A DNA stretch of 64,000 bases, taken from the sequence record MT028491.1; one strand, written 5' to 3'. The position numbers and the translations under genes were made by a program. The notes under the pieces were generated by a model, which worked only from the letters and a program-made list of their open reading frames with translations, searched no databases and had not been told where the DNA came from. Positions 2 through 17,641 of the stretch are shown here, in pieces (position 1 is the first letter of the stretch; each line of letters starts with the position of its first letter).

Positions 2-1381
2 TTAATTAAATTTAAATTTACTAAACTTTCCGTTTCCAGATTGAGCGCTTCCATTAGTATTTACATTGTTTGAATAGTTCGATTGAACGCTGTTATTATC
101 ATTTGGATCATAATAATTGACAGTTTCAGCATCAAATCCTAGGGTAAACATACCTATAGAGTCTTTGTTCGAATATCGAGACTTCAATACCTTAATAAAA
201 ATATTCTCAATTTCCTTTTCTTTTGGCTTGATAATTGCAAGCAAAAGATCGGCAGTCATGACAATACCATACGATTCCGATACGTCTTCCATTTCTGGAT
301 CACCTTCGGCATTTCGGTTAAACTGTGCGGCTGAAAAGAGCGCAACATTTTCGGTAATTGCAAGAGCGCGCAATTCTTCCGAAACCGACTTTTGAATCGT
401 ATATGAATTATGATTTTTAAGGCTTGCCTTGGCACTCTGTAGAATGCCCATATAATCAACATAAATGATGTCTGGAACGAACTTTTCCTTCATCTTAAGG
501 TCTTTAAGAAGAGACTTGATGTGAAGGACAGAACAGCTAGAAGTTGGAAGCTGTTTGATTTTTAGTTTGCCGAGTGTCTTAGTCTTTAGCTCTTGAATAC
601 GATTCTTAAATCGGTCCATTGTAATGTTACCGTTTTCAAGATCGTTAATGGAGAAGTTCAATAGGCTGGCGTCAATTCGCTGACCAATCTTAAATTCTTC
701 CATTTCCAAAGAGATATAAAGAACGTTGTAACCAAGCTTTAGATGATCGGCGGCACATTTACACATCATGCCGGTTTTACCCGCGTGTGGAGCGCCTAGG
801 AACAGATTGAAAGTCTTCTTTGGAACACCGCCATTTGTCGCCTTATTAAATGAGCCTATACCAAATGGAATCTTAACTTCCTTATTGGTATAGAAGGCGA
901 AACGACTTTCAAAATCGTCAAGATAGTCGTGTCCAATGGAACTATCAAAATCAACTGCTAGGGCATCTTCTAGAAGGCTTGGAACCTGACCAATCTCAAC
1001 AGCACCGTTTGTTCCTTGATAAGAATTCATTGCTTCGGCAATGGCGTTATAGATAGCCTTGTTTCGGCAATAATCCTTCGCCATATCCATCAACCAATCG
1101 GTATCATGTTTGGTTTCGATGTTGTCAGATATCTTGTTTAAAACGTCTTCAACCTGTTTAACCGCAATTTCGTTAAGTGTAGAATCGTTAGAAATATCAA
1201 TAGCTAGGGCTTGTAGATTGGTCTGTTTATCAAACTTTTCTTGATATTGCTTAATGTACTTGAGAATGATTTTCTCACCTTCATTAGCCATATATTCAGG
1301 CTTAATGTAAGGGATAGATTTTCTAAAAAAGTCGTCATCATTAATAAGGCCACTAAGGATAATTTGTGTTTCGGTTAGCAT
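2..1381 (-). CDS. gp41: Replicative DNA helicase (T4 gp41/DnaB-like)
   Basis: Walker A GAPHAGKT, Walker B IYVDY, SAAQFNR and DVSESYG motifs; follows uvsX as in T4-like phages. Confidence 0.95.
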   Translation of the reverse strand: MLTETQIILSGLINDDDFFRKSIPYIKPEYMANEGEKIILKYIKQYQEKFDKQTNLQALAIDISNDSTLNEIAVKQVEDVLNKISDNIETKHDTDWLMDMAKDYCRNKAIYNAIAEAMNSYQGTNGAVEIGQVPSLLEDALAVDFDSSIGHDYLDDFESRFAFYTNKEVKIPFGIGSFNKATNGGVPKKTFNLFLGAPHAGKTGMMCKCAADHLKLGYNVLYISLEMEEFKIGQRIDASLLNFSINDLENGNITMDRFKNRIQELKTKTLGKLKIKQLPTSSCSVLHIKSLLKDLKMKEKFVPDIIYVDYMGILQSAKASLKNHNSYTIQKSVSEELRALAITENVALFSAAQFNRNAEGDPEMEDVSESYGIVMTADLLLAIIKPKEKEIENIFIKVLKSRYSNKDSIGMFTLGFDAETVNYYDPNDNNSVQSNYSNNVNTNGSAQSGNGKFSKFKFN

Positions 1382-1404
1382 TAAATTCCTGAATAAAAAG
1401 TATG

Positions 1405-1440
1405 AAAAAATGGCATGGTTGCCTTTACGACAACCACACC
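1405..1440 (-). terminator. Intrinsic terminator between uvsX and gp41
   Basis: Minus strand GGTGTGGTTGTC-GTAAA-GGCAACCATGCC stem followed by a T6 tract. Confidence 0.6.
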
Positions 1441-1465
1441 GGTATGCGATTAAATTTTTAATAAA

Positions 1466-2575
1466 TTAATGGTCTAGATTGACAACCTTACCTTCAATGT
1501 CGTTGTCAATTTCTTCGCCAGCGATTTCAATATCTTCTTCGATATCAGCATCAGGAACAATCTCTTCCTCTTCTGGCTTACCACCTAACTTATAATTGAT
1601 TTGACACCAATTGTCAATCTTAGCTAGGACTTCATCAGTGAAATATTCTTCTGGATTACGCCAGATTTCCTTTTCATAGACTTTCTTACCGCCCGGAACC
1701 TCATAGCGAGTGGCTACCTTTTTGAAGATACCCAATTCTTCGGCAATTGGCAGAAGACCATAATATTTGTGTAGACCGGTCTGATAGGAAAGTTTAAGTT
1801 CAACCTTGATAGAATCGCGAGTGAAACGCGACTTATCCATCTTAATGGTCAAGATGTTACCAACAACATCATTGCCGTCCTTATCCTTTTTCTTGGAAAT
1901 CATTACGGTTGATGAAGCAGCATACTTAACACCACCACCGCCTGAAACTTCCTTTGTAGGGACATATGCACCAACAACCTGATAAGTGTGGTTGGTGAGG
2001 ATCAAAGGAACGCCAGCACGTCCAAGACGTTGTGTAAGTGTACGGAAGATAGAACGGATAATCTGTTGCTTGGTCATATCGCGAGTGTTCTTACCTTCGG
2101 TCGAGTCTTCCAATTCCTTAGAAGATGGAAGATTTCCAAGGGAATCGAGTACCATCAATAGAGGAACACGATCCTTTTCCTTTTGAGCTTCGATAGACTG
2201 TAGAATCTTGAGCGCCTTGCCTCTAAAATCCTCTAGGGTTTCAGGCTGGACAATATAGACGTTTTCTGCATTGATTTCACGTTGACGGAAGAATTCACGA
2301 TCAAGAGCAAATTCCGTATCAAAATAGACAACGCGACCAGTAGGATTATCAATCAAAAACTGTCTAACGGCAGTCAATGCAAAATAGGTCTTACCAACGG
2401 CACTTTCACCGGCAAATGCAGTGATACGGTTATTGGCCACACCACCAAAAATTGAGCCTGAAATAGCGGCATTTAGAGCATAACAACCGGTATCAATAAA
2501 CCCGGTAGTGGCGATTTCTTCCTGAAAATGAGGATCAACGCCCTTAATAATATCTAGAAATTCTGAGTCTTTCAA
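1466..2575 (-). CDS. uvsX: RecA-like recombinase UvsX
   Basis: GESAVGKT Walker A, VYFDTE, VLDSLG, SGGGGVKYAAS; TTG start. Confidence 0.95.
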   Translation of the reverse strand: MKDSEFLDIIKGVDPHFQEEIATTGFIDTGCYALNAAISGSIFGGVANNRITAFAGESAVGKTYFALTAVRQFLIDNPTGRVVYFDTEFALDREFFRQREINAENVYIVQPETLEDFRGKALKILQSIEAQKEKDRVPLLMVLDSLGNLPSSKELEDSTEGKNTRDMTKQQIIRSIFRTLTQRLGRAGVPLILTNHTYQVVGAYVPTKEVSGGGGVKYAASSTVMISKKKDKDGNDVVGNILTIKMDKSRFTRDSIKVELKLSYQTGLHKYYGLLPIAEELGIFKKVATRYEVPGGKKVYEKEIWRNPEEYFTDEVLAKIDNWCQINYKLGGKPEEEEIVPDADIEEDIEIAGEEIDNDIEGKVVNLDH

Positions 2576-2577
2576 AA

Positions 2578-2826
2578 TTATTTCCTTATTTCTTTAAGTA
2601 ATTTCTTAACTTTTTTAATATTTTGTTCAATATCATCTACACGATCTGGCCATTTAATAGTAACCACACCGTTCTTATCAGGTAGATTTTTTAGATTTTC
2701 AAGTAAAGACATAATAAGTTCTTCTAATTCGTCTATTGACTTACTATTGTCTTTTTCTTGTTTAGTACGCTTTGGGTTTAGAGTTTCTTCCCTAAACCCA
2801 AAGTCATCATCAGAAAAAGAAGTCAT
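2578..2826 (-). CDS. Small hypothetical protein between gp43 and uvsX
   Basis: 82-aa ORF tightly packed between the two genes; no recognisable motif. Confidence 0.7.
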   Translation of the reverse strand: MTSFSDDDFGFREETLNPKRTKQEKDNSKSIDELEELIMSLLENLKNLPDKNGVVTIKWPDRVDDIEQNIKKVKKLLKEIRK

Positions 2827-5335
2827 CTAATGTTGCTTGTTCCTCTAGCGTCCAACGTCTGGTTTCCAGAAGTCTAGACAAAGGTTCTTCAAATACTTTT
2901 TGAAATTGAGTATCATAATCAATAAACCCATCTAACTGAAATTCTTTTGGAAGTTCTGTTAGACACGCCAAGTCTTTAAAACCTAGTGGGTTTGGGGTTT
3001 TCAATGCAACGATCTTAATTTTGTCGCCAGAATTAATAAGGTCGTATCGTTCCTTCAAATTGTGATGATTCAAGAGTTTGTTATACAGAGCGCTTGCTTT
3101 TGCATTTTGCGGTGCACCCTTAATTGGATTTCCCTTATGATCTGTATATTTTCCAAGATCGCTAATACCCTTGGAAATACCGATTTCATGGAAAGCCATA
3201 TTCTTGAATTCTTCACGTTTTTTATTGGTGAATTCCCAAATGTCCTTTTCCTGCCCTGTGATAATAATCTTCATCGCATCACCCATCCATTCACGCACCT
3301 TATGTGGTGTAGATGTCTGGACAACCTCAAGGCCGGTTACAGTAAGCTTTGGTTCGCTATAACGAACTTTTTCCGAATCCCAAACATAAAGGCCATAACG
3401 CTTTTTGGCAGTCTGAATCATCACTTCGCAAATCTTTTCTCTCTTGAAAGAAAGCTTGCGCTGGAATGAATTCAAATAGTCGGCAAGGTCTTCAAAACAC
3501 TTATCGAAAACAGGCTGTAGCTTTTCATCTGAGACACGATCTAGGAAGTTAACAATGTCTTCCTTTGTCGCATTTGGGCGCTTGGCTAGAAGGATATCAA
3601 CGAATTTCGAGCAATCAAGATAGATCGAGTCAGTGTCGCCATAAACAACATACTCTTGATCAAATGTACCTAATGTCTTATTGAGATATTCATTGATATA
3701 TTTCATAGCCGATAGAATCGTAAGCTGGCCTGAAATGGTAACAGCTTCGGCATTCTTAAGACTATAATAACGGAAATTAGGTTCTCCTAGAGCGCCGTAT
3801 AGAGCATTAATAGCAACCTTACGGGCATTCTGTGAGACGTTTTCAATGGCTTCTGTTAGTGACCATTTATCATATTCCGCCGTATCACCTTTGTTCTTGA
3901 AATCCTGTGCCAAACGAGCAGCATCAAGCATTTTGTTTTTATGCTCTTTACGCTTGTTGAAGAACAGTTCAATAACTTCTGGAATGATCCCTTTGAAATC
4001 TCTTGTGTAGAGAACACCATTAGCCGACATGCAAAGGTTTTCGTTTTGGAAACGTTTTCTCTCTGCAAAATCATCCTGATTGATAAGATGGTTTAGGGAT
4101 ACACCAGATACAAAACCACGCATGGTTTCTGGTGAAATGTTATAGTGCATAATAATCGAAGGATATAGACTTGTCAAGTCAAAAGATACAACCCAAGGAC
4201 TAAAATGAGGTTCAACCTCTTTTACATATGCACCTTCAAATTTAACTTTAGGATTAGATTGACGTGGTGGAATAACAATATTATTCTTCTTAAGATAATT
4301 GAAAAGAATAGCATCCCACATTCTAGTATTATGAAGAATATCTTCATAATTACACTTCGCGTCATAAGTCATAGAGATAATAAGATCGAATAATTTCTTC
4401 TTATCATCAAGATCAGCTAGTAGTTCAACGTCCTGTACGTTATACTCAATATGATTTTGCGGGTCTGTTCTATACAACAAATGGCCCGGAATACCGTTAT
4501 CTAGCTTAAGCTTGCCTTTTCCTAATTCATTTCTACAAACCCATTCAAGAGCATATGAAGCTTGTGGACTAAACCCCATTTTCTTATACAAGAATTGATA
4601 GTCGATATGGGTAACACCTAAAAGAGTATATTCCTTTACCAGCTTACCGTTTTCGTAATATTCTCTTTCTCTAATTTCTTTCCATGGAGAAAGGCGCTTG
4701 GCAAATGAATCATCCAAGACTTTACGAATTCTATTGATGATATAAGGCAAATCGAAACCAGCCGAATACCAACCAGTGATGATGTCAAAACCAGTTTCTT
4801 CCATGAAACGAACAAAGTCTGCCAACATTTCATGTTCATAATCATATTTCTTGAATACAGTCTTACGGTTGGGATCGGGAACATAATCATTGATAGCAAA
4901 AACATAATAAGTACGGTTCCATTCAACAGTGATAACATTAATCACTTCTGGTGTACCGTATGGATCGGGTCTTGATCCTTCTGTTACTTCTGTTTCAATG
5001 TCGAGGCGACCAATTCTAATCAGGGATCGATTGTATGCTACGGCTTCATCTGGAAACTCATCCGACAAAAAAGCGTAGGTGAAATTATCCATGCCATAGA
5101 TTTCAAACCCATCAACATCCTTATATTGGTTGATAAAGTTATTGGCGTCTTTCAAACCATCAAAATGATGTGGTTTGACGTTCTTTCCTTCAAGGGTTTT
5201 GTATCCTGTAGGATCATTAGAAAGCGTGAATAGAGTTGGTTCATAAGGAACCTTTCGATTGAAAGGCTCACCATTCTCATAACCACGCAAGAGGATATTG
5301 TTACCCCACTTTACAGCGTTGGTATAAAAATACAT
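2810..5335 (-). CDS. gp43: Family B DNA polymerase (T4 gp43-like)
   Basis: Exonuclease DIET and GFDLPY; SFDLTSLYPS, KVAINALYG, YGDTDS; C-terminal clamp-binding TLDDFF. Confidence 0.97.
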   Translation of the reverse strand: MYFYTNAVKWGNNILLRGYENGEPFNRKVPYEPTLFTLSNDPTGYKTLEGKNVKPHHFDGLKDANNFINQYKDVDGFEIYGMDNFTYAFLSDEFPDEAVAYNRSLIRIGRLDIETEVTEGSRPDPYGTPEVINVITVEWNRTYYVFAINDYVPDPNRKTVFKKYDYEHEMLADFVRFMEETGFDIITGWYSAGFDLPYIINRIRKVLDDSFAKRLSPWKEIREREYYENGKLVKEYTLLGVTHIDYQFLYKKMGFSPQASYALEWVCRNELGKGKLKLDNGIPGHLLYRTDPQNHIEYNVQDVELLADLDDKKKLFDLIISMTYDAKCNYEDILHNTRMWDAILFNYLKKNNIVIPPRQSNPKVKFEGAYVKEVEPHFSPWVVSFDLTSLYPSIIMHYNISPETMRGFVSGVSLNHLINQDDFAERKRFQNENLCMSANGVLYTRDFKGIIPEVIELFFNKRKEHKNKMLDAARLAQDFKNKGDTAEYDKWSLTEAIENVSQNARKVAINALYGALGEPNFRYYSLKNAEAVTISGQLTILSAMKYINEYLNKTLGTFDQEYVVYGDTDSIYLDCSKFVDILLAKRPNATKEDIVNFLDRVSDEKLQPVFDKCFEDLADYLNSFQRKLSFKREKICEVMIQTAKKRYGLYVWDSEKVRYSEPKLTVTGLEVVQTSTPHKVREWMGDAMKIIITGQEKDIWEFTNKKREEFKNMAFHEIGISKGISDLGKYTDHKGNPIKGAPQNAKASALYNKLLNHHNLKERYDLINSGDKIKIVALKTPNPLGFKDLACLTELPKEFQLDGFIDYDTQFQKVFEEPLSRLLETRRWTLEEQATLDDFFF

Positions 5336-5436
5336 TAAATTCCTATATAAAAATCAAAATAATTATCACATTGATTCCAAAGCGGAATCAAATGCATATT
5401 AAAATCGTATGCGTATTATATATCATAAACATAAGC

Positions 5437-5476
5437 AAAAAACAAGGGCAGAGTCGTTAAACCCTACCCCTTGTTT
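5437..5476 (-). terminator. Intrinsic terminator after the Gly/Asn-rich gene
   Basis: Minus strand AACAAGGGGTAGGGT-TTAACG-ACTCTGCCCTTGTT followed by a T tract. Confidence 0.6.
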
Positions 5477-5506
5477 TCATTTTTTAATGGTTTAGGCTGT
5501 TATGGA

Positions 5507-6454
5507 TTAGTGGCGACCGCCACCCTTTCCACCACCGGAATTGCCTTTGCCGCCACCGTTGCCGTTGCCATTTCCATGGCCATTTCCGTTACCGTTGCCA
5601 TTCCCATGACCATGGCCATTATTGCCGGAATTTCCGTTACCGTTGCCGTTACCATTATTGCCGGAATTTCCGTTACCGTTGCCGTTACCATTATTGGAAC
5701 CACCGTTGCCAGTGCCGGGACCATTGCCACCGGTATTACCACCGCCATTGCCGGGATTTCCGTTATTACCATTTCCATTGCCGGGTCCACCGGTATTACC
5801 GTTGCCGTTTCCATTACCGTTGTTTCCACCAGTATCACCGCCACCAGTGTTACCGCCTGTGTCTCCACCACCGGTATTTCCACCGTTGTCAGAACCACCG
5901 TTATCACCGCCACCGGAATTATCACCACCGCCAGTGTTTCCGCCGCCGTTATCCGATCCACCGGTATTATCACCACCGCCTGTGTCTCCACCACCGGTAT
6001 TTCCGCCGGTATTATCGCCACCGCCAGTGTTTCCGCCGTTGTCAGAACCACCAGTATTTCCACCTGTGTTTCCGCCAGAGCCGGAGTCAGTTCCACCAGT
6101 ATTGCCCGTATTCGATCCACCGGTATTTCCACCAGTTGAACCAGTACCGGAACCAGAGTCCGTGCCGCCCGTCGAACCAGAACCGGCGTTAGTACCACCA
6201 GTTGCACCACCGGAAGTGCCGGAATTTGCACCACTGGTATTTCCGCCAGTATTCGTACCGCCATTGGCACCACTGTTTCCCTTGCCGGAATCTGAATGAT
6301 CAGACCCACGACCGGACGAACCAGCATCACCGAAAAGCGTTCGCTTATAGACAATGGCATTACCCTTGTCGATATCGCTGGCGTCAAGTGCACCAGCATA
6401 GGCAGCGCCCGACATAAGAACAGCAACGGCCATAGACAGGTAAATACGCTTCAT
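5507..6454 (-). CDS. Secreted Gly/Asn-rich repeat protein with Sec signal peptide
   Basis: AAGGAG SD precedes ATG at 6454 (MKRIYLSMAVAVLMSGAAYA-GA: n/h/c regions, AxA site); then GGNT, GGGDN and GNGNGN repeats. Confidence 0.8.
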   Translation of the reverse strand: MKRIYLSMAVAVLMSGAAYAGALDASDIDKGNAIVYKRTLFGDAGSSGRGSDHSDSGKGNSGANGGTNTGGNTSGANSGTSGGATGGTNAGSGSTGGTDSGSGTGSTGGNTGGSNTGNTGGTDSGSGGNTGGNTGGSDNGGNTGGGDNTGGNTGGGDTGGGDNTGGSDNGGGNTGGGDNSGGGDNGGSDNGGNTGGGDTGGNTGGGDTGGNNGNGNGNGNTGGPGNGNGNNGNPGNGGGNTGGNGPGTGNGGSNNGNGNGNGNSGNNGNGNGNGNSGNNGHGHGNGNGNGNGHGNGNGNGGGKGNSGGGKGGGRH

Positions 6455-10321: not shown

Positions 10322-11128
10322 TTAAGTAAGTGCGGCAAGCGCCCCAAGGTTGCCCTTGAAGACATATGTTCCAATATGATTGAGATTCATGAATGGAAGT
10401 ATCCATACCTTTTTGCCAAGCTTGCGCGCCTTTTGGCAAAAGAAATAGTCTTCTGATAGATATCGTCTGGACTCTGGATCAATTTCGGCTTGGAAATAAA
10501 GCATAATATCGCGAGAACCATTGAAATTGTCGTCTCTCACGTGATCGGGCTTAAATAGCAATTCAGGGTATGCTTGATCAAAATCGTCTAGAAGTTCCTT
10601 ACGGAATAACATGAAGCCTGTACCGGTTTCAGCGACTTCCATAGGCTCTACCATCTTGAATGAGCCTGTCTTGAGCGGATTAAACACGTAATCCCCTGCA
10701 TAATGTTCTAGGACGTTTGGATTTTCATCCGCATAGCCACGATCAACAGCGGCTTTAACTCTTTCCCATGCAATGTTCTTTTTTGGATAGGTTGCGGCTA
10801 GGATATCATAATCACTGCCGGTTTCTGACAATTGCATCAGGTAAAAAACGTATAAAGGATTAAATTCAATATCAGCATCGATGAAGAGCATATGCGTCAT
10901 GCCGGATCGCTTAAATTCGTCGCAACAGTATGATCTAGCTCTTGTGATTAGGGATTCATTTGCAATAAAATGAACCTTCATCGGTATTTGGTATTTCGTA
11001 GCAATAATAGTGATTTCTAATAGGCTCTTAGCAAAATTGACATTGCAACTCCCACCATAAGCAGGAGTTGCAATAAACAATGACTTGCCTTTAAGACTAT
11101 CGAAATCGATAGTCGGACTTTGTGTCAT
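10322..11128 (-). CDS. GT-A fold glycosyltransferase-like protein (GT2-related)
   Basis: IATPAYGG, ESLITRAR, FIDADI (DxD), GTGFML, YLSEDYFFC, H-I-G C-terminal motif. Confidence 0.7.
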   Translation of the reverse strand: MTQSPTIDFDSLKGKSLFIATPAYGGSCNVNFAKSLLEITIIATKYQIPMKVHFIANESLITRARSYCCDEFKRSGMTHMLFIDADIEFNPLYVFYLMQLSETGSDYDILAATYPKKNIAWERVKAAVDRGYADENPNVLEHYAGDYVFNPLKTGSFKMVEPMEVAETGTGFMLFRKELLDDFDQAYPELLFKPDHVRDDNFNGSRDIMLYFQAEIDPESRRYLSEDYFFCQKARKLGKKVWILPFMNLNHIGTYVFKGNLGALAALT

Positions 11129-11140
11129 TCTTACCTTTCA

Positions 11141-12079
11141 TTATCCATTAGCATTAAGCTTCTTATGAAGATTTGAATAGAATTCGAAGTTATTAGCTTC
11201 GCTGATCTGTTCATCTTCTGTCTTCGAATCGTCTTCATAAGAAGAGATATAGAAGTCAATCAAACCGTCTCGGAAACCATCCGCGAAACGAGAAAATGTA
11301 ATGCGCATAGCACGTACAACCGAAGCACCAGACGATTCCATTTCTTCCAAAAGGAACTTGAGACGACGAGACGAAAGGGTATGTTCGGTATCATGACCGC
11401 CATTCTTCTGTGCTTCGCGAACCTGACTTGCATAGTCTGCAATACGTTCAAGTGGATCAAAGTTCGTGTAACCAGAAAGATCGATTCCACGGTCTTCAAC
11501 AAATTTCTTGAACGATTCAAGTTCCTGATCGCGAGACATATAATCGAATTCAAGAACCGCCGCGATACGTTCAAGGAACGCTTCGTTAAGGTACTGAGTA
11601 CCGATATACTTACCGGTTTCATCACCCTGACCCTTAGTATTTGCAGTCAAGAAAATCTGGAAACCGGGGGCCGGAAGAATGGTTTCGTTGCTATCCGCAA
11701 TATGATAGCCATTGCCTTCCATGACGGATTGCAAGCACATGATATTATTTGGATGTGCACAGTCAAATTCGTCCAAAACCAGAACAGCACCTTGCTGCAT
11801 AGCTTCTGTTACAGGCCCGTACTGGAAGATGGTTTCACCAGCCTTAAGGCGGAAACCACCCATAAGATCATCCTTGGTCGTTTCCTTGGTAACAGAAAAC
11901 TTGAGCATAGGACGATTGTTATGGGCGCAAGCCTGTTCAACCGTCATCGACTTACCAGAACCAGTTTCACCAACCAAAAGAACCGGCTTGAAACGCTTAT
12001 TCAGAATGACCTTTTCAATATAGTCATAATGAGCGGTTTTCACGAATTCCGGCTTCTTCTTTGGCACGATAATTGTCAT
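11141..12079 (-). CDS. MoxR/CobS-like AAA+ ATPase
   Basis: GETGSGKS Walker A, LVLDEFD Walker B, TANTKGQGD, LNEAFLERI arginine finger, LSSRRL. Confidence 0.9.
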   Translation of the reverse strand: MTIIVPKKKPEFVKTAHYDYIEKVILNKRFKPVLLVGETGSGKSMTVEQACAHNNRPMLKFSVTKETTKDDLMGGFRLKAGETIFQYGPVTEAMQQGAVLVLDEFDCAHPNNIMCLQSVMEGNGYHIADSNETILPAPGFQIFLTANTKGQGDETGKYIGTQYLNEAFLERIAAVLEFDYMSRDQELESFKKFVEDRGIDLSGYTNFDPLERIADYASQVREAQKNGGHDTEHTLSSRRLKFLLEEMESSGASVVRAMRITFSRFADGFRDGLIDFYISSYEDDSKTEDEQISEANNFEFYSNLHKKLNANG

Positions 12080-12159: not shown

Positions 12160-14259
12160 TTACAAAATCGCCTTCATCAAATCCTTAGCAAATTTCAGGT
12201 ATTCCGGGCGATTCTGAATAACCTTGCGAGACAGGTTGTAATGCTTCGTGTATTCAGATTCCACACCTTCACTATGAGTCTTTTCAAGATCAATAGCGAT
12301 AAAGGCCGCGTTGAACAGTTCCTTATAAAGCTTGATCGTATGACCATAATAAGCCTGAGTCGTTGAAGAAAACAACTTACCAGTCTTATTATCCTGCAAA
12401 CCACCAACACTACCAAGTTCATCACCACCATCAGTGATAGCAATAACACCAAATTTCTTGATATCATTACCTTCAATGAAAGAGTCTGCAACATAACGAG
12501 CCGTCAACAGAGTGTTTGTGAGTGGAGTACCACCCAAGCTAACACCGCCGTCCTTAAGACCGGACATCATTCCATTATAAACCTGATTGATTTCTGATTT
12601 CTTAAGATCAGAAGAGAACAGTTCATAAACGTTATAACCGCCGCCCCAACCAGATTTGAAATGATTGGCAATGGTTCGATTACCAGTCTTCATGTTGTTG
12701 ATCGTAAGACCGACAGAGAAGAACTTGAAAGGAACGCCAACTCGCTTAAAGAACATTGACATGATGTAAGCATGTTCCGTAACCTTCAAGACCTTATCAG
12801 ACATAGAGCCTGAATAGTCAAGGAAAATAAAGAAACCGTACTTATCACCAGTGTATTCAATCTCACTATGCTTAAAGATATCTTCTGAAACCTTGTAAGC
12901 ATGAAGTTCACGCGGGTTAATCTTACCAGTCTTTGCAGTCTGAGTCTTATGATATTCTTCTGACTTCTTATTCAGTTCGAAACCACGAACAAGACTAGAA
13001 ACGTTATGTCGAATATCATCCTTCACGTTATTTGCAAACCTACGGAAATGGTTTGCAACATGCTTGGCAGGAATATAAATCTTCGTCGGATCATATTGAC
13101 CCTGTGGACGTGCGATACCGGTAGCATGACCGTAATGGTTGTTTCCACCGACAGTACCAGTTGTTACATGACCAGATGATGTGTTGTTAGTGTCTAGTGC
13201 ATGAGAAGGTGAAGAACCTTCTGATCCACCAGTTCCAACGGAAACATCGCCTTGCTTATAACCAGAACCGGGACCGGAATTGGTTCCCTTCTGTTGCTGA
13301 TCTTGTTCGGCTTGATCCTTTGCAGCCTGTGCCATCTTTTCCTTAATTTTCTTAAGGATTTCCTTGGCTTCATCATCAAGATCAGATTCGTCAATGGCCT
13401 TACCATCACCAGAACCAACTTGAGCGCCGCCCTTGGAATTGACATTGATTTTATTAGCCGAGTCAGATGAAAGCATATCCAAGAGTTGCTTAAGGAACTT
13501 TGTCATCTGTTCCTTATCGCGTTGCTTGTCCTTGGCATACTGTTCATCAAGAAAATGCTTCATAATGTCTTCTGACAACGTGTAAACATGATCTTCCGTA
13601 ACGGTTCGATCCATACGTTCGAAGAAATCAGTTTCAGCGGTTTCCTTAAACGTTGGTTTGGTTGACTTTCCATCCCAACGCGACTTGTAAAAGATGTTTG
13701 CCGCGTTAAGAAATTCCATCATCTTACGGAAAGATTCGTTGAACTTCTTCTGTTCTTCACTTTGTTCGTTTGTGACCTTTTCCGCGTCCTTGATCGACTT
13801 GGCAATAATACCCTTTTCGGCCTTTTCAGGATTGAACAATGGAGACTCACGAATGATTCCAGCCGCAACCTTATAATCGGCGCGCATACCCGGAAGACGA
13901 TGTTGAATCTTTTTGTCAATACGGACATCTTCACAGACATTGTGAACGCTGGAAAGGATGTTATTCCACATTTGGGAAACATTCTTGTTTGCTTCCAAAC
14001 GCTTCATAAATTCTTCATAGCTTGTCCAAATAACATGTGCTGATTCGTGACCGACAAGCATACGGAACATCCCATCTGGAACATCCCAATAAGGAATAAC
14101 AATATCGCTATTCTTCAAATCGACATAAGCCGTTGGAGCATTTTCGTCCAGACGAAGACGCAATTGCTTTTCCGTCACCAATTCGGCCAAAATATTCAAT
14201 CGGCCTACATTCGGCATTGGATAAATGCGACCAGTCGTAACGTTCTCAAGCTTTGCCAT
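12160..14259 (-). CDS. CobT-like vWA protein with N-terminal HExxH metallopeptidase-like motif
   Basis: GHESAH near the N-terminus; MIDAS FLDYSGSMS, GGTPL, AITDG; Gly/Ser low-complexity linker; adjacent to the MoxR/CobS ATPase. Confidence 0.8.
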   Translation of the reverse strand: MAKLENVTTGRIYPMPNVGRLNILAELVTEKQLRLRLDENAPTAYVDLKNSDIVIPYWDVPDGMFRMLVGHESAHVIWTSYEEFMKRLEANKNVSQMWNNILSSVHNVCEDVRIDKKIQHRLPGMRADYKVAAGIIRESPLFNPEKAEKGIIAKSIKDAEKVTNEQSEEQKKFNESFRKMMEFLNAANIFYKSRWDGKSTKPTFKETAETDFFERMDRTVTEDHVYTLSEDIMKHFLDEQYAKDKQRDKEQMTKFLKQLLDMLSSDSANKINVNSKGGAQVGSGDGKAIDESDLDDEAKEILKKIKEKMAQAAKDQAEQDQQQKGTNSGPGSGYKQGDVSVGTGGSEGSSPSHALDTNNTSSGHVTTGTVGGNNHYGHATGIARPQGQYDPTKIYIPAKHVANHFRRFANNVKDDIRHNVSSLVRGFELNKKSEEYHKTQTAKTGKINPRELHAYKVSEDIFKHSEIEYTGDKYGFFIFLDYSGSMSDKVLKVTEHAYIMSMFFKRVGVPFKFFSVGLTINNMKTGNRTIANHFKSGWGGGYNVYELFSSDLKKSEINQVYNGMMSGLKDGGVSLGGTPLTNTLLTARYVADSFIEGNDIKKFGVIAITDGGDELGSVGGLQDNKTGKLFSSTTQAYYGHTIKLYKELFNAAFIAIDLEKTHSEGVESEYTKHYNLSRKVIQNRPEYLKFAKDLMKAIL

Positions 14260-14306: not shown

Positions 14307-14801
14307 TTAGCTATCAGCCTTAACAATGTCAACACCTTTTTTCATAGCTTGTTCAAAAGAATATCGATTAACCTTTGACTTAATGGTTTCACCGTCTAAC
14401 GCTTCAATCGCTCTTTGGATTACAGCGGCGGTAGTTCCACCAAATACGTTTGTCATAGTCTCACCAGTTGGTAATGTAAAGCGGACTCTGATTTCCTTTG
14501 CCCTTTTTACAGGAATTGGCTTATTCCCAAAAAGTGGACATACATCATCAACTTCAACAATATCCTGTGATCGACTCACAATACGCGGGTTGAACATTGG
14601 TAAATAGCTCTTAGGGTCTTGCCAATTGCCAACGATAATAGCTCGCTTATTGATACCAATCATGTTAGCAGAAAGCCCGATTGACTTGGTATCAATCAAG
14701 GCTTCCACCAGCTTAGTGCAAAGATCGTCAATATCGTCTTTATCCATATAGACATAGACGTTTGCCGGTTTCAAATCCATATAATTTACAATTTCGGTCA
14801 C
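14307..14801 (-). CDS. Peptide deformylase homologue, catalytically degenerate
   Basis: IGLSANMIG (motif 1), MFNPRI, DDVCPL (motif 2), VKRAKEIRVRF, IQRAIEALDG (motif 3 lacking HExxH); overlaps the gp46 stop. Confidence 0.75.
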   Translation of the reverse strand: MTEIVNYMDLKPANVYVYMDKDDIDDLCTKLVEALIDTKSIGLSANMIGINKRAIIVGNWQDPKSYLPMFNPRIVSRSQDIVEVDDVCPLFGNKPIPVKRAKEIRVRFTLPTGETMTNVFGGTTAAVIQRAIEALDGETIKSKVNRYSFEQAMKKGVDIVKADS

Positions 14802-16519
14802 TGTCTGTTTTCCCTCATGACGCTAAAGTTATTTTCCTTAACAAATTCAATAGTATCTGTAATATGTTCCTTCATAGCTTCCGAATGGGAAATAATGAAG
14901 ATATTGGCTTGAAGGGTATCAAAAATGCTAAGCATTGCATGAACGCCTTCTGAGTCCATTGACGAATCACCAACTTCATCCAAGAACAAGATATTCGTAT
15001 TAATGTTGTTGCGGCGTCTGGCAATTTCTCGCCATGCGAAAAGAATAGCCAAATCAATACGTTGCTTTTCACCTTCTGAGAAGTTCTCATAGGTGAAATT
15101 ATCACGGTATCGGCTCTTGATGGTTTCATTAAAGCTACTGTCAAGAGTGAATTCAACATAAAAATTCATATGTTCCAGATACATATTCATCAATTCATTG
15201 AACAATGGAATGTATTGTTCAATGACTTCTGCTTTAATAGCCGTATCTTTCATCATGAGTTTTGAAATATTCATCACTTCACGTTCACGATATAGACTAT
15301 CTTTAGTGATTCTTTTTTCTTCCAAATCCTTTTCTGCAAGATCAAGTTTATTCTTGTATTCGGATGTATCGGCTTGACCGGTGCTTTCTTCCTTTTCAAT
15401 CTCTCTTTCGATATAATCAATCATGCTTCTCTTGTCAGAAATTGATTGAGCGATTGAAGATGATCTTTGTGTCAGTTTTTGAAGATCGTTTGCCTTTTGT
15501 CTAGCCGTGGTAATAACGTCACGAATCTTGATACTCTTATCGTTATATTCCTTGCTTGCCTTTTGATTTTCATCAATCTCTTGACATAGCACATGAATGC
15601 GATTCTTGCGATTTTCTGGATCAAATGGGTTCTTACAAGTTGGACAAGATTCATTACCCTTAAGGAATGTTACCTCTTTATTCTTAAGACCATATTCCGT
15701 TTGAAGGGTATTAACCTTAAGTTTCAGCTTGGTTTCAGCTTCTTCATATTTAGTAACATCTTGGATTTCACCAGACAGTTTTTCAATAGCCTGTGCAACC
15801 TTATCTTGGTCAATAGTTAACTGATCAATTTCACTCTGGATAGACTTGATCTTTTCACGCTTCGAACTAATGCCTTCTTTATTAGCTTTTTCCAATCTTT
15901 CAATCACACTCTTGTTAGTCTGAATTTCATTCACAAGAGACTTGATATCATTGTCATAGCTATTGATTTCGGTATTAAGCTTGTCGTTGAATTCCTTCAT
16001 CACATCAGACATAACGGAAAAAACATCAAGCCCAAGAATGGTTTCTGTCACTCTCCTACGTTCTGCCGTCTTGAGAAGCATGAAAGGCTGATATTTACCA
16101 GATGCAATAACGACAATCTGTTTAAAGGTTTCATAACCAAATCCTAGAATGTGTGATTCTAGATAATCCTGTAGTTCTCTCTTCGATCCAGCATCGGCAT
16201 CAATAGGTTCACCATCCTTGGTGATTTCAAAGATATCTGGCTTAATACCACGATGCACAATATATTCCGAATGATTTTTTTCGAAACATATCTTGATTTC
16301 GGCACCCTTCTTATTAATCGAATTGATAAGCTTGTCTTTGGTAATTCCGCGAAAATCTTTACCAAATATAGCATAAGAAAATGCAGAAATGATTGTAGAT
16401 TTACCACGTCCATTCTTACCAAAGATAAGAGTAGTTTTAGATTTTTCAAAATCAATCTTAATAGGATGGTTGCCAGTAGCAAGAATATTCTTATATTCAA
16501 TCCACTTAAACTTAATCAA
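14798..16519 (-). CDS. gp46: Recombination ATPase (Rad50/SbcC-like)
   Basis: GKNGRGKST, coiled coils with CPTC zinc hook, FSEGEKQR signature, LFLDE. Confidence 0.95.
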   Translation of the reverse strand: MIKFKWIEYKNILATGNHPIKIDFEKSKTTLIFGKNGRGKSTIISAFSYAIFGKDFRGITKDKLINSINKKGAEIKICFEKNHSEYIVHRGIKPDIFEITKDGEPIDADAGSKRELQDYLESHILGFGYETFKQIVVIASGKYQPFMLLKTAERRRVTETILGLDVFSVMSDVMKEFNDKLNTEINSYDNDIKSLVNEIQTNKSVIERLEKANKEGISSKREKIKSIQSEIDQLTIDQDKVAQAIEKLSGEIQDVTKYEEAETKLKLKVNTLQTEYGLKNKEVTFLKGNESCPTCKNPFDPENRKNRIHVLCQEIDENQKASKEYNDKSIKIRDVITTARQKANDLQKLTQRSSSIAQSISDKRSMIDYIEREIEKEESTGQADTSEYKNKLDLAEKDLEEKRITKDSLYREREVMNISKLMMKDTAIKAEVIEQYIPLFNELMNMYLEHMNFYVEFTLDSSFNETIKSRYRDNFTYENFSEGEKQRIDLAILFAWREIARRRNNINTNILFLDEVGDSSMDSEGVHAMLSIFDTLQANIFIISHSEAMKEHITDTIEFVKENNFSVMRENRQ

Positions 16520-17565: not shown

Positions 17566-17641
17566 TATTCACTCCATATACAAAATTATTATAATTTAAA
17601 AAATAAACGCGAGTCGTTTTATCCAACCCGCGTTTATATGT

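Follow-up and report, generated by a model that had tools for sequence, protein, structure and literature searches.

A conserved probable pseudo-deformylase overlapping gp46 in Ochrobactrum phage vB_OspM_OC and related T4-like phages

The gene phiOC_p015 of Ochrobactrum phage vB_OspM_OC, labelled 'peptide deformylase' (PDF) in GenBank, very probably encodes a protein of PDF fold that is maintained by selection and does not deformylate. The phage (MT028491.1) is a T4-like jumbo myovirus of 227.7 kb from sewage; the window analysed here is a stretch of 64,000 nt that matches positions 1–64000 of that record at 100% identity, and all coordinates of the phage's genes refer to it. phiOC_p015 is an ORF of 164 aa on the minus strand (14307..14801). 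At its 5' end, four nucleotides (GTGA; 14798..14801, minus strand) contain both its GTG start codon and the TGA stop codon of the upstream gene, an arrangement of translational coupling, in agreement with the original prediction of a full-length ORF coupled to gp46. The upstream gene, gp46 (14798..16519, minus strand), is identified by its annotation and by PF13476 in its homologues as the Rad50/SbcC-like subunit of the recombination nuclease. The paper describing phage vB_OspM_OC makes no mention of phiOC_p015.

A second PDF was sought in MT028491.1 by tblastn with phiOC_p015, a search that detected 24–33% identical PDFs elsewhere; a single locus was returned and no paralogue was evident. A link with defence was sought with PADLOC, in which neither the pseudo-PDF nor the two genes downstream of it had a match. 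In a promoter scan of the locus, counts were not above those of shuffles; in a terminator scan they were weakly above shuffles, a hint that the stretch from gp47 to the AAA ATPase gene has no internal terminator. Two strong terminator-like hairpins at 17603–17637 and 11041–11075 (both minus strand; 14- and 16-bp stems, T-rich tails) flank the stretch from gp47 to the genes past the AAA ATPase, and no similarly strong hairpin lies between gp46, the pseudo-PDF and the gene downstream of it.

Fold and former catalytic centre

The protein matches PF01327 with an E-value of 6.4e-21 and 75 bits (gathering score, 22.8), over model positions 19–152 of 156, and PHROG 2890, 'peptide deformylase', at 1.2e-27. 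At least 60 solved PDFs were matched by sequence, the best being that of cyanophage S-SSM7 (PDB 3uwa; 1.6e-11). The AlphaFold2 model, for which 124 homologues served as input, has a mean pLDDT of 94.9, with helices at residues 140–143 and 146–160; by Foldseek it aligns with the full-length PDFs of E. coli and Plasmodium falciparum at TM 0.82–0.84. Pfam score, model and structural matches thus all give a PDF domain and fold, and the C-terminal extension is modelled as an alpha-helix that superposes on that of E. coli PDF, as in type 1B enzymes. phiOC_p015 is an unambiguous PDF homologue that keeps the whole type-1B fold, and the retained fold that had been proposed from the letters alone is borne out by both profile and structure comparison. 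Scores against the NCBIfam equivalog TIGR00079 (cut-off, 103.95 bits) are of another kind: canonical phage PDFs pass (Cr30, 119.1; P0005, 108.8 bits), whereas phiOC_p015 (62.7) and its relatives P0003 (57.2) and P0159 (52.2) stay below.

The register of the three PDF motifs was confirmed by HMMER alignments to solved PDFs, by a MAFFT alignment with E. coli Def and by a check of the translation, and the earlier reading of all three as aligned yet altered holds. Former motif I (14661..14684, minus strand) reads SIGLSANM for GIGLAAxQ; former motif II (14532..14546, minus strand) reads DVCPL for EGCLS, the metal-ligand Cys being kept and Gly, Leu and Ser replaced; former motif III (14391..14417, minus strand) reads QRAIEALDG for QHExDHLxG, so that HExxH has become R-A-I-E-A. 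In mature E. coli numbering, Q50 corresponds to Met47, C90 to Cys88, H132 to Arg130, E133 to Ala131 and H136 to Ala134. Four of the five catalytic and metal-binding residues are gone, namely the motif I Gln, which helps to stabilise the transition state, both His and the Glu, just as had been noted at the outset; Cys88 is the sole survivor and the only one left of three protein metal ligands. In E. coli PDF, mutational loss of these ligands abolishes activity. As neither HExxH histidine is left, nor the Glu between them, nor the Gln of motif I, phiOC_p015 is predicted from its sequence to be incapable of canonical metal-dependent deformylation.

The motif I substitution is not decisive alone, as Met is also carried at this position by PDFs of 136–137 aa with intact HExxH, and Gln to Met by itself may be compatible with activity. 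These short Met-type PDFs (P0188, P0191–P0215 and others, e.g., P0195; 33 of 237 aligned proteins, mostly from ENA assemblies) read G-M-A-A-N-M-I-G and keep ExCLS and HExxH.

Relatives, gene order and selection

Relatives were sought in 5.8 billion clustered proteins and 1.84 billion representatives. Four close lineages were found, all in metagenome assemblies: P0002 and P0003, with 57–58% identity to phiOC_p015, and P0010 and P0159, with 34–37%; P0159 is present on 10 contigs from several samples. Together with phiOC_p015 they form a supported clade (SH-aLRT 96). A scan of IMG/VR with the clade alignment gave no further member, returning only L005, a canonical PDF on a podovirus-like contig; among JGI metagenome contigs, 81 pattern matches included zero relatives of the clade.

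The window and every clade contig that is long enough have one gene order in common: uvsY, uvsW, gp55, gp47, gp46, PDF-like gene, 'CobT'-like gene and AAA ATPase, followed by gp45, gp44, gp62, regA and gp43. In every such contig the start of the PDF-like gene overlaps the gp46 stop; overlaps of the same kind (ATGA or 7–8 nt) occur in L002, L003, L009, L012, L019, L008 and L016. The more distant sister P0133 retains the order gp46, PDF-like gene, CobT-like gene.

Several features of the contigs are recorded here for completeness. In L012, from a related metagenomic phage, the gp46 homologue (3984–6125) is 713 aa long, compared with about 572 aa in the others, and gives a faint match to intein splicing; uvsY (164–591) is split there into two adjoining ORFs (59 and 82 aa), pointing to a frameshift or an error of assembly. 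In L005 (IMG/VR contig 3300032053_000801), a 1315-aa ORF (50–3997) upstream of the canonical viral PDF contains two similar inserts with HNH-like motifs and looks like a structural or portal-type gene broken by two inteins or homing-endonuclease domains. P0028, P0040 and P0134 have 323–336 aa, about twice the PDF length, with two separate query matches each, and look like tandem PDF domains.

The downstream neighbour of phiOC_p015 (12160..14259, minus strand), labelled 'cobalamin biosynthesis protein CobT', carries an HExxH (residues 71–75) and an E-D-x-R-I-D (residues 110–115) that do not vary among the five lineages compared. Its C-terminal part is vWA-like, and cyanophage homologues of this part are labelled 'peptidase'; the protein has zero Pfam matches at E ≤0.001. 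The gene after it (11141–12079, minus strand) encodes an AAA_5 (MoxR/CobS-like) ATPase. The 'CobT' product resembles less a subunit of cobaltochelatase than a putative metallopeptidase-vWA protein that has an AAA+ ATPase as its partner.

Intact ORFs of the pseudo-PDF were present in all five lineages, at 27–58% identity. By the Nei-Gojobori method (NG86), pN was 0.30–0.31 and pS 0.72–0.75; the codon-model omega was 0.028, compared with 0.010–0.024 in nine neighbours (gp46, gp47, gp45, gp44 and uvsW included), synonymous sites being saturated in all available pairs (pS 0.72–0.90), so that absolute omega is unreliable and the comparison with neighbours alone carries weight. Loci L009, L010, L011, L012 and L013 were unusable for dN/dS, having been fetched by exact protein identity and hence having zero amino-acid changes. 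Within subclades, the pseudo-PDF (57–58% identity) has diverged like gp46, gp47, gp45, the CobT-like protein and regA (52–61%); between the two subclades it is more diverged (27–37%) than its neighbours (44–70%). As judged from these alignments, purifying selection has maintained phiOC_p015, within a conserved block of genes, in five or more phage lineages. The original prediction of a gene that is maintained, free of frameshifts and not decaying is upheld by the five intact ORFs, an omega of about 0.03 and a divergence matching that of essential neighbours; neutral decay (omega near 1, frameshifts), named beforehand as its refutation, was not seen in the homologues.

The 158 nearest proteins are a query-biased set, made up mostly of one representative per 50%-identity cluster; the canonical Q/C/H/E/H pentad is found in 124 of them, and the other 34 are degenerate in many different ways. 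Where their contigs carry phage genes, the degenerate PDFs belong to T4-like phages and occupy the same locus: P0013, which overlaps the gp46 stop, has QueD downstream, as does P0155; P0026 is 42% identical to the canonical P0005, both having a downstream MazG-like gene and common synteny; the contig of P0041 is too short for synteny to be judged. Canonical PDFs are located between gp46 and gp45 in phages Cr30 and DLP_6, and 1–2 kb downstream of gp46 on the contigs of P0005 and P0006. The canonical PDFs occupy the same gp46–gp45 interval and the dead copies therefore derive from a PDF already resident in the phages; the ancestor of phiOC_p015 is the deformylase that T4-like phages have in the variable region past gp46. 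With respect to loss of catalysis, parsimony on a quick tree gave 16 changes, at least four of them forced by well-supported branches; a single clade of all 34 degenerate sequences was not rejected by the AU test (p 0.397), and recurrent loss of catalysis is therefore not claimed as shown. The similarity and synteny of P0026 with the canonical P0005 suggest at least two losses.

A second cultured example is provided by Rhizobium phage RHph_I1_18 (MN988519, EVB91_063; L008 4812-5393), likewise a T4-like phage of an alphaproteobacterial host, in which a PDF with a degenerate centre overlaps the gp46 stop by 4 nt. It differs from phiOC_p015, to which it is 24–26% identical, in keeping the motif I Gln, in having Ser for Cys and QQLIEI for QHExDH, and in being followed by QueD instead of the HExxH-vWA gene. 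GO terms attribute iron binding and deformylase activity to EVB91_063, yet its metal-ligand Cys and HExxH are absent; from these residues, the annotation 'peptide deformylase' is probably wrong.

The rebuilt pocket and candidate functions

Across the five clade members, 29 of 164 positions are invariant overall, compared with four of the five formerly catalytic ones (Met47, Cys88, Arg130 and Ala134; Fisher p 0.0036); Pro89 is invariant too. Because the replacement residues Met, Cys, Arg and Ala are invariant, the former active site was remodelled and then became fixed, and the invariance of ex-catalytic positions with new residues is the main reason to regard the pocket as still in use. The sister P0133 keeps Met at motif I, has Asn for Cys88 and still has the first His; by this comparison, the Met/Cys/Arg/Ala site is specific to the clade and not universal for this gene arrangement.

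The reading favoured here, tentatively, is that phiOC_p015 may act as a non-hydrolysing binder by means of the remodelled pocket, N-terminal (formyl-)Met being the likeliest ligand. The ancestral catalytic pocket would have been converted to a metal-free binding site, in which the guanidinium of Arg130 would probably substitute for the metal beside Cys88. The protein would bind without hydrolysing, and would most likely bind the ligand of its ancestor, (formyl-)Met at the N-terminus of nascent or newly made proteins; chosen N-termini might in this way be retained, or shielded from host PDF and from Met aminopeptidase. Two observations bear on the pocket from the other side. The motif I Gly, of which the backbone binds substrate in genuine PDFs, is replaced by Ala in two clade members; and other degenerate lineages carry quite different residues at the pocket positions, which counts against a pocket binder and would fit a function independent of the pocket. 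A formyl-Met binder had been one of three uses suggested beforehand. Of the other two, a decoy, for metal-chelating PDF inhibitors, would be unlikely with the metal site gone, and a ribosome exit-tunnel competitor appears to fit the conserved, rebuilt pocket less well than the binder does.

As a ribosome exit-site occupant, the dead PDF would dock through its C-terminal helix near uL22, displace host PDF, Met aminopeptidase or trigger factor, and alter co-translational processing during infection. This we hold to be unlikely. The full type-1B architecture is kept, E. coli PDF, which docks on the ribosome through its C-terminal helix, offers a precedent, and the counterpart of that helix (residues 146–160; 14322..14366, minus strand) is among the best conserved segments in the OC/L002/L003 subclade, where its AMKK motif is common with canonical relatives. 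By contrast, the tail beyond motif III, which in 169 canonical relatives has a median net charge of +7, is at +2 in phiOC_p015, at +6 in both P0002 and P0003, and at -1 in both P0010 and P0159. The C-terminal helix noted in the original prediction is thus present in the model, though far less basic than in canonical relatives; the exit-tunnel competitor drawn from it is not supported as put forward, since the positive charge of the tail is not retained throughout the clade and the tightest constraint falls on former active-site residues, for which a pure blocker would have no need. Retention of the helix is in itself no sign of a ribosome function, as active viral PDFs function without it (Grzela 2017). 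The ribosome model is accordingly weakened: it would retain its structural basis, the helix, and lose its electrostatic one, and the charges do not support it across the clade.

We regard as quite unlikely a role as non-catalytic subunit or adaptor of a neighbouring phage complex, either the gp46/gp47 nuclease or the HExxH-vWA protein with its AAA+ ATPase. It would account for the overlap with the gp46 stop, which is found in all degenerate lineages in which the upstream gene was seen (OC and the seven loci listed above, RHph_I1_18 included), and which sets them apart from the canonical PDFs examined, which have at least one ORF between themselves and gp46; it would also account for the HExxH-vWA and AAA pair downstream in six of six OC-type lineages. 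Adjacency is weak evidence, given that T4-like core gene order is generally conserved, and the contrast between coupled and separated genes comes from few, possibly non-independent lineages. Downstream of other degenerate PDFs lies QueD or a MazG-like gene instead, and cyanophages have a homologue of the vWA protein, labelled 'peptidase', but no dead PDF.

That the protein is still an enzyme with another chemistry or substrate, for example a metal-independent Cys88-Arg130 hydrolase or a residual deformylase, is improbable. Cys88, Arg130 and Asp/Glu86 are conserved in the clade, and type 3 PDFs of Trypanosoma brucei with altered motifs are reported in the literature to retain activity; the changes described in those proteins lie in motifs I and II, whereas here HExxH itself is gone. 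No conserved His or other general base is found among the 29 invariant positions, and the Cys is absent from the sister P0133 and from several other degenerate lineages.

A functionless relic, that is, a PDF gene in neutral decay with its deletion pending, would fit the loss of catalytic residues and the variation of degenerate patterns among lineages, and can practically be dismissed in view of the intact ORFs at such low identities in five lineages, an omega comparable with that of essential neighbours, the conserved position and gp46 overlap, the invariant replacement residues and a fold predicted with very high confidence.

Comparison with known deformylases, and meaning

Phage PDFs that have been tested are active (Grzela 2017). 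PDF is among the most abundant gene families of viral metagenomes. Phage copies have been assumed to be active and to boost protein maturation (Grzela 2017); from the conservation of the motifs it had been suggested that every phage PDF might be active (Grzela et al. 2017). The active phage PDFs (S-SSM7, 3uwa; Vibrio phage Vp16, 5mtc; Caulobacter phage Cr30; Stenotrophomonas phage DLP_6) share fold and family with phiOC_p015, and those of Cr30 and DLP_6 share its T4-like neighbourhood as well; they differ in keeping GxGLAAxQ, EGCLS and HExxH, where phiOC_p015 is without Gln, His, Glu and His. Among relatives whose motifs are intact, the nearest are 31–40% identical to it and have the C-terminal helix in common with it. 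E. coli Def (type 1B) has the same overall structure, C-terminal helix included (TM 0.84; about 162–168 aligned columns), at 18% identity, and differs by its catalytic centre and its far more basic helix.

Inactive or weakly active PDFs of type 3 or accessory kind, with no known function, include the products of second def-like genes in Staphylococcus aureus and Streptococcus pneumoniae, and archaeal and trypanosomatid proteins. They resemble phiOC_p015 in fold, in retention by their genomes and in substitutions within conserved motifs, the type 3 character, which phiOC_p015 also displays. They are, unlike it, cellular paralogues with substitutions described mainly in motifs I and II; phiOC_p015 is phage-encoded, of type-1B-like phage PDF origin, has lost HExxH and has a fixed Met/Cys/Pro/Arg/Ala set. 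In a tree made up of the 155 nearest representatives, the clade sits among PDFs from T4-like phage contigs, which suggests an origin separate from type 3 PDFs.

A literature search that included full text found no description of a conserved, catalytically dead phage PDF. Inactive bacterial PDF paralogues were already known; the pseudo-deformylase described here is phage-borne, comes from a type-1B-like PDF and has a fixed replacement pocket. phiOC_p015 is a clear counter-example to the assumption that phage PDFs are active: it lacks the catalytic centre, yet its conservation equals that of the surrounding replication genes, and its rebuilt pocket is fixed in several lineages. That 34 of the 158 nearest representatives, a query-biased sample, are degenerate suggests that some viral proteins annotated 'peptide deformylase' are not deformylases, and both cultured examples, vB_OspM_OC and RHph_I1_18, carry proteins labelled as active enzymes.

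It is conceivable, if doubtful, that non-cyanobacterial T4-like phages carry a widespread and so far unrecognised family of gp46-coupled pseudo-deformylases, which would bind nascent N-termini, the ribosome exit site or both, and would give the phage control over co-translational N-terminal processing. If this were true, retention of the formyl group, excision of Met and exposure of N-degrons would come under phage control during infection, and the family would include the OC clade as a specialised branch, marked by its fixed Met/Cys/Arg/Ala pocket. The finding raises the question of how a phage benefits from a non-catalytic PDF, which is testable in a cultivable phage-host pair, and the answer could carry over to the inactive PDF paralogues of bacteria.
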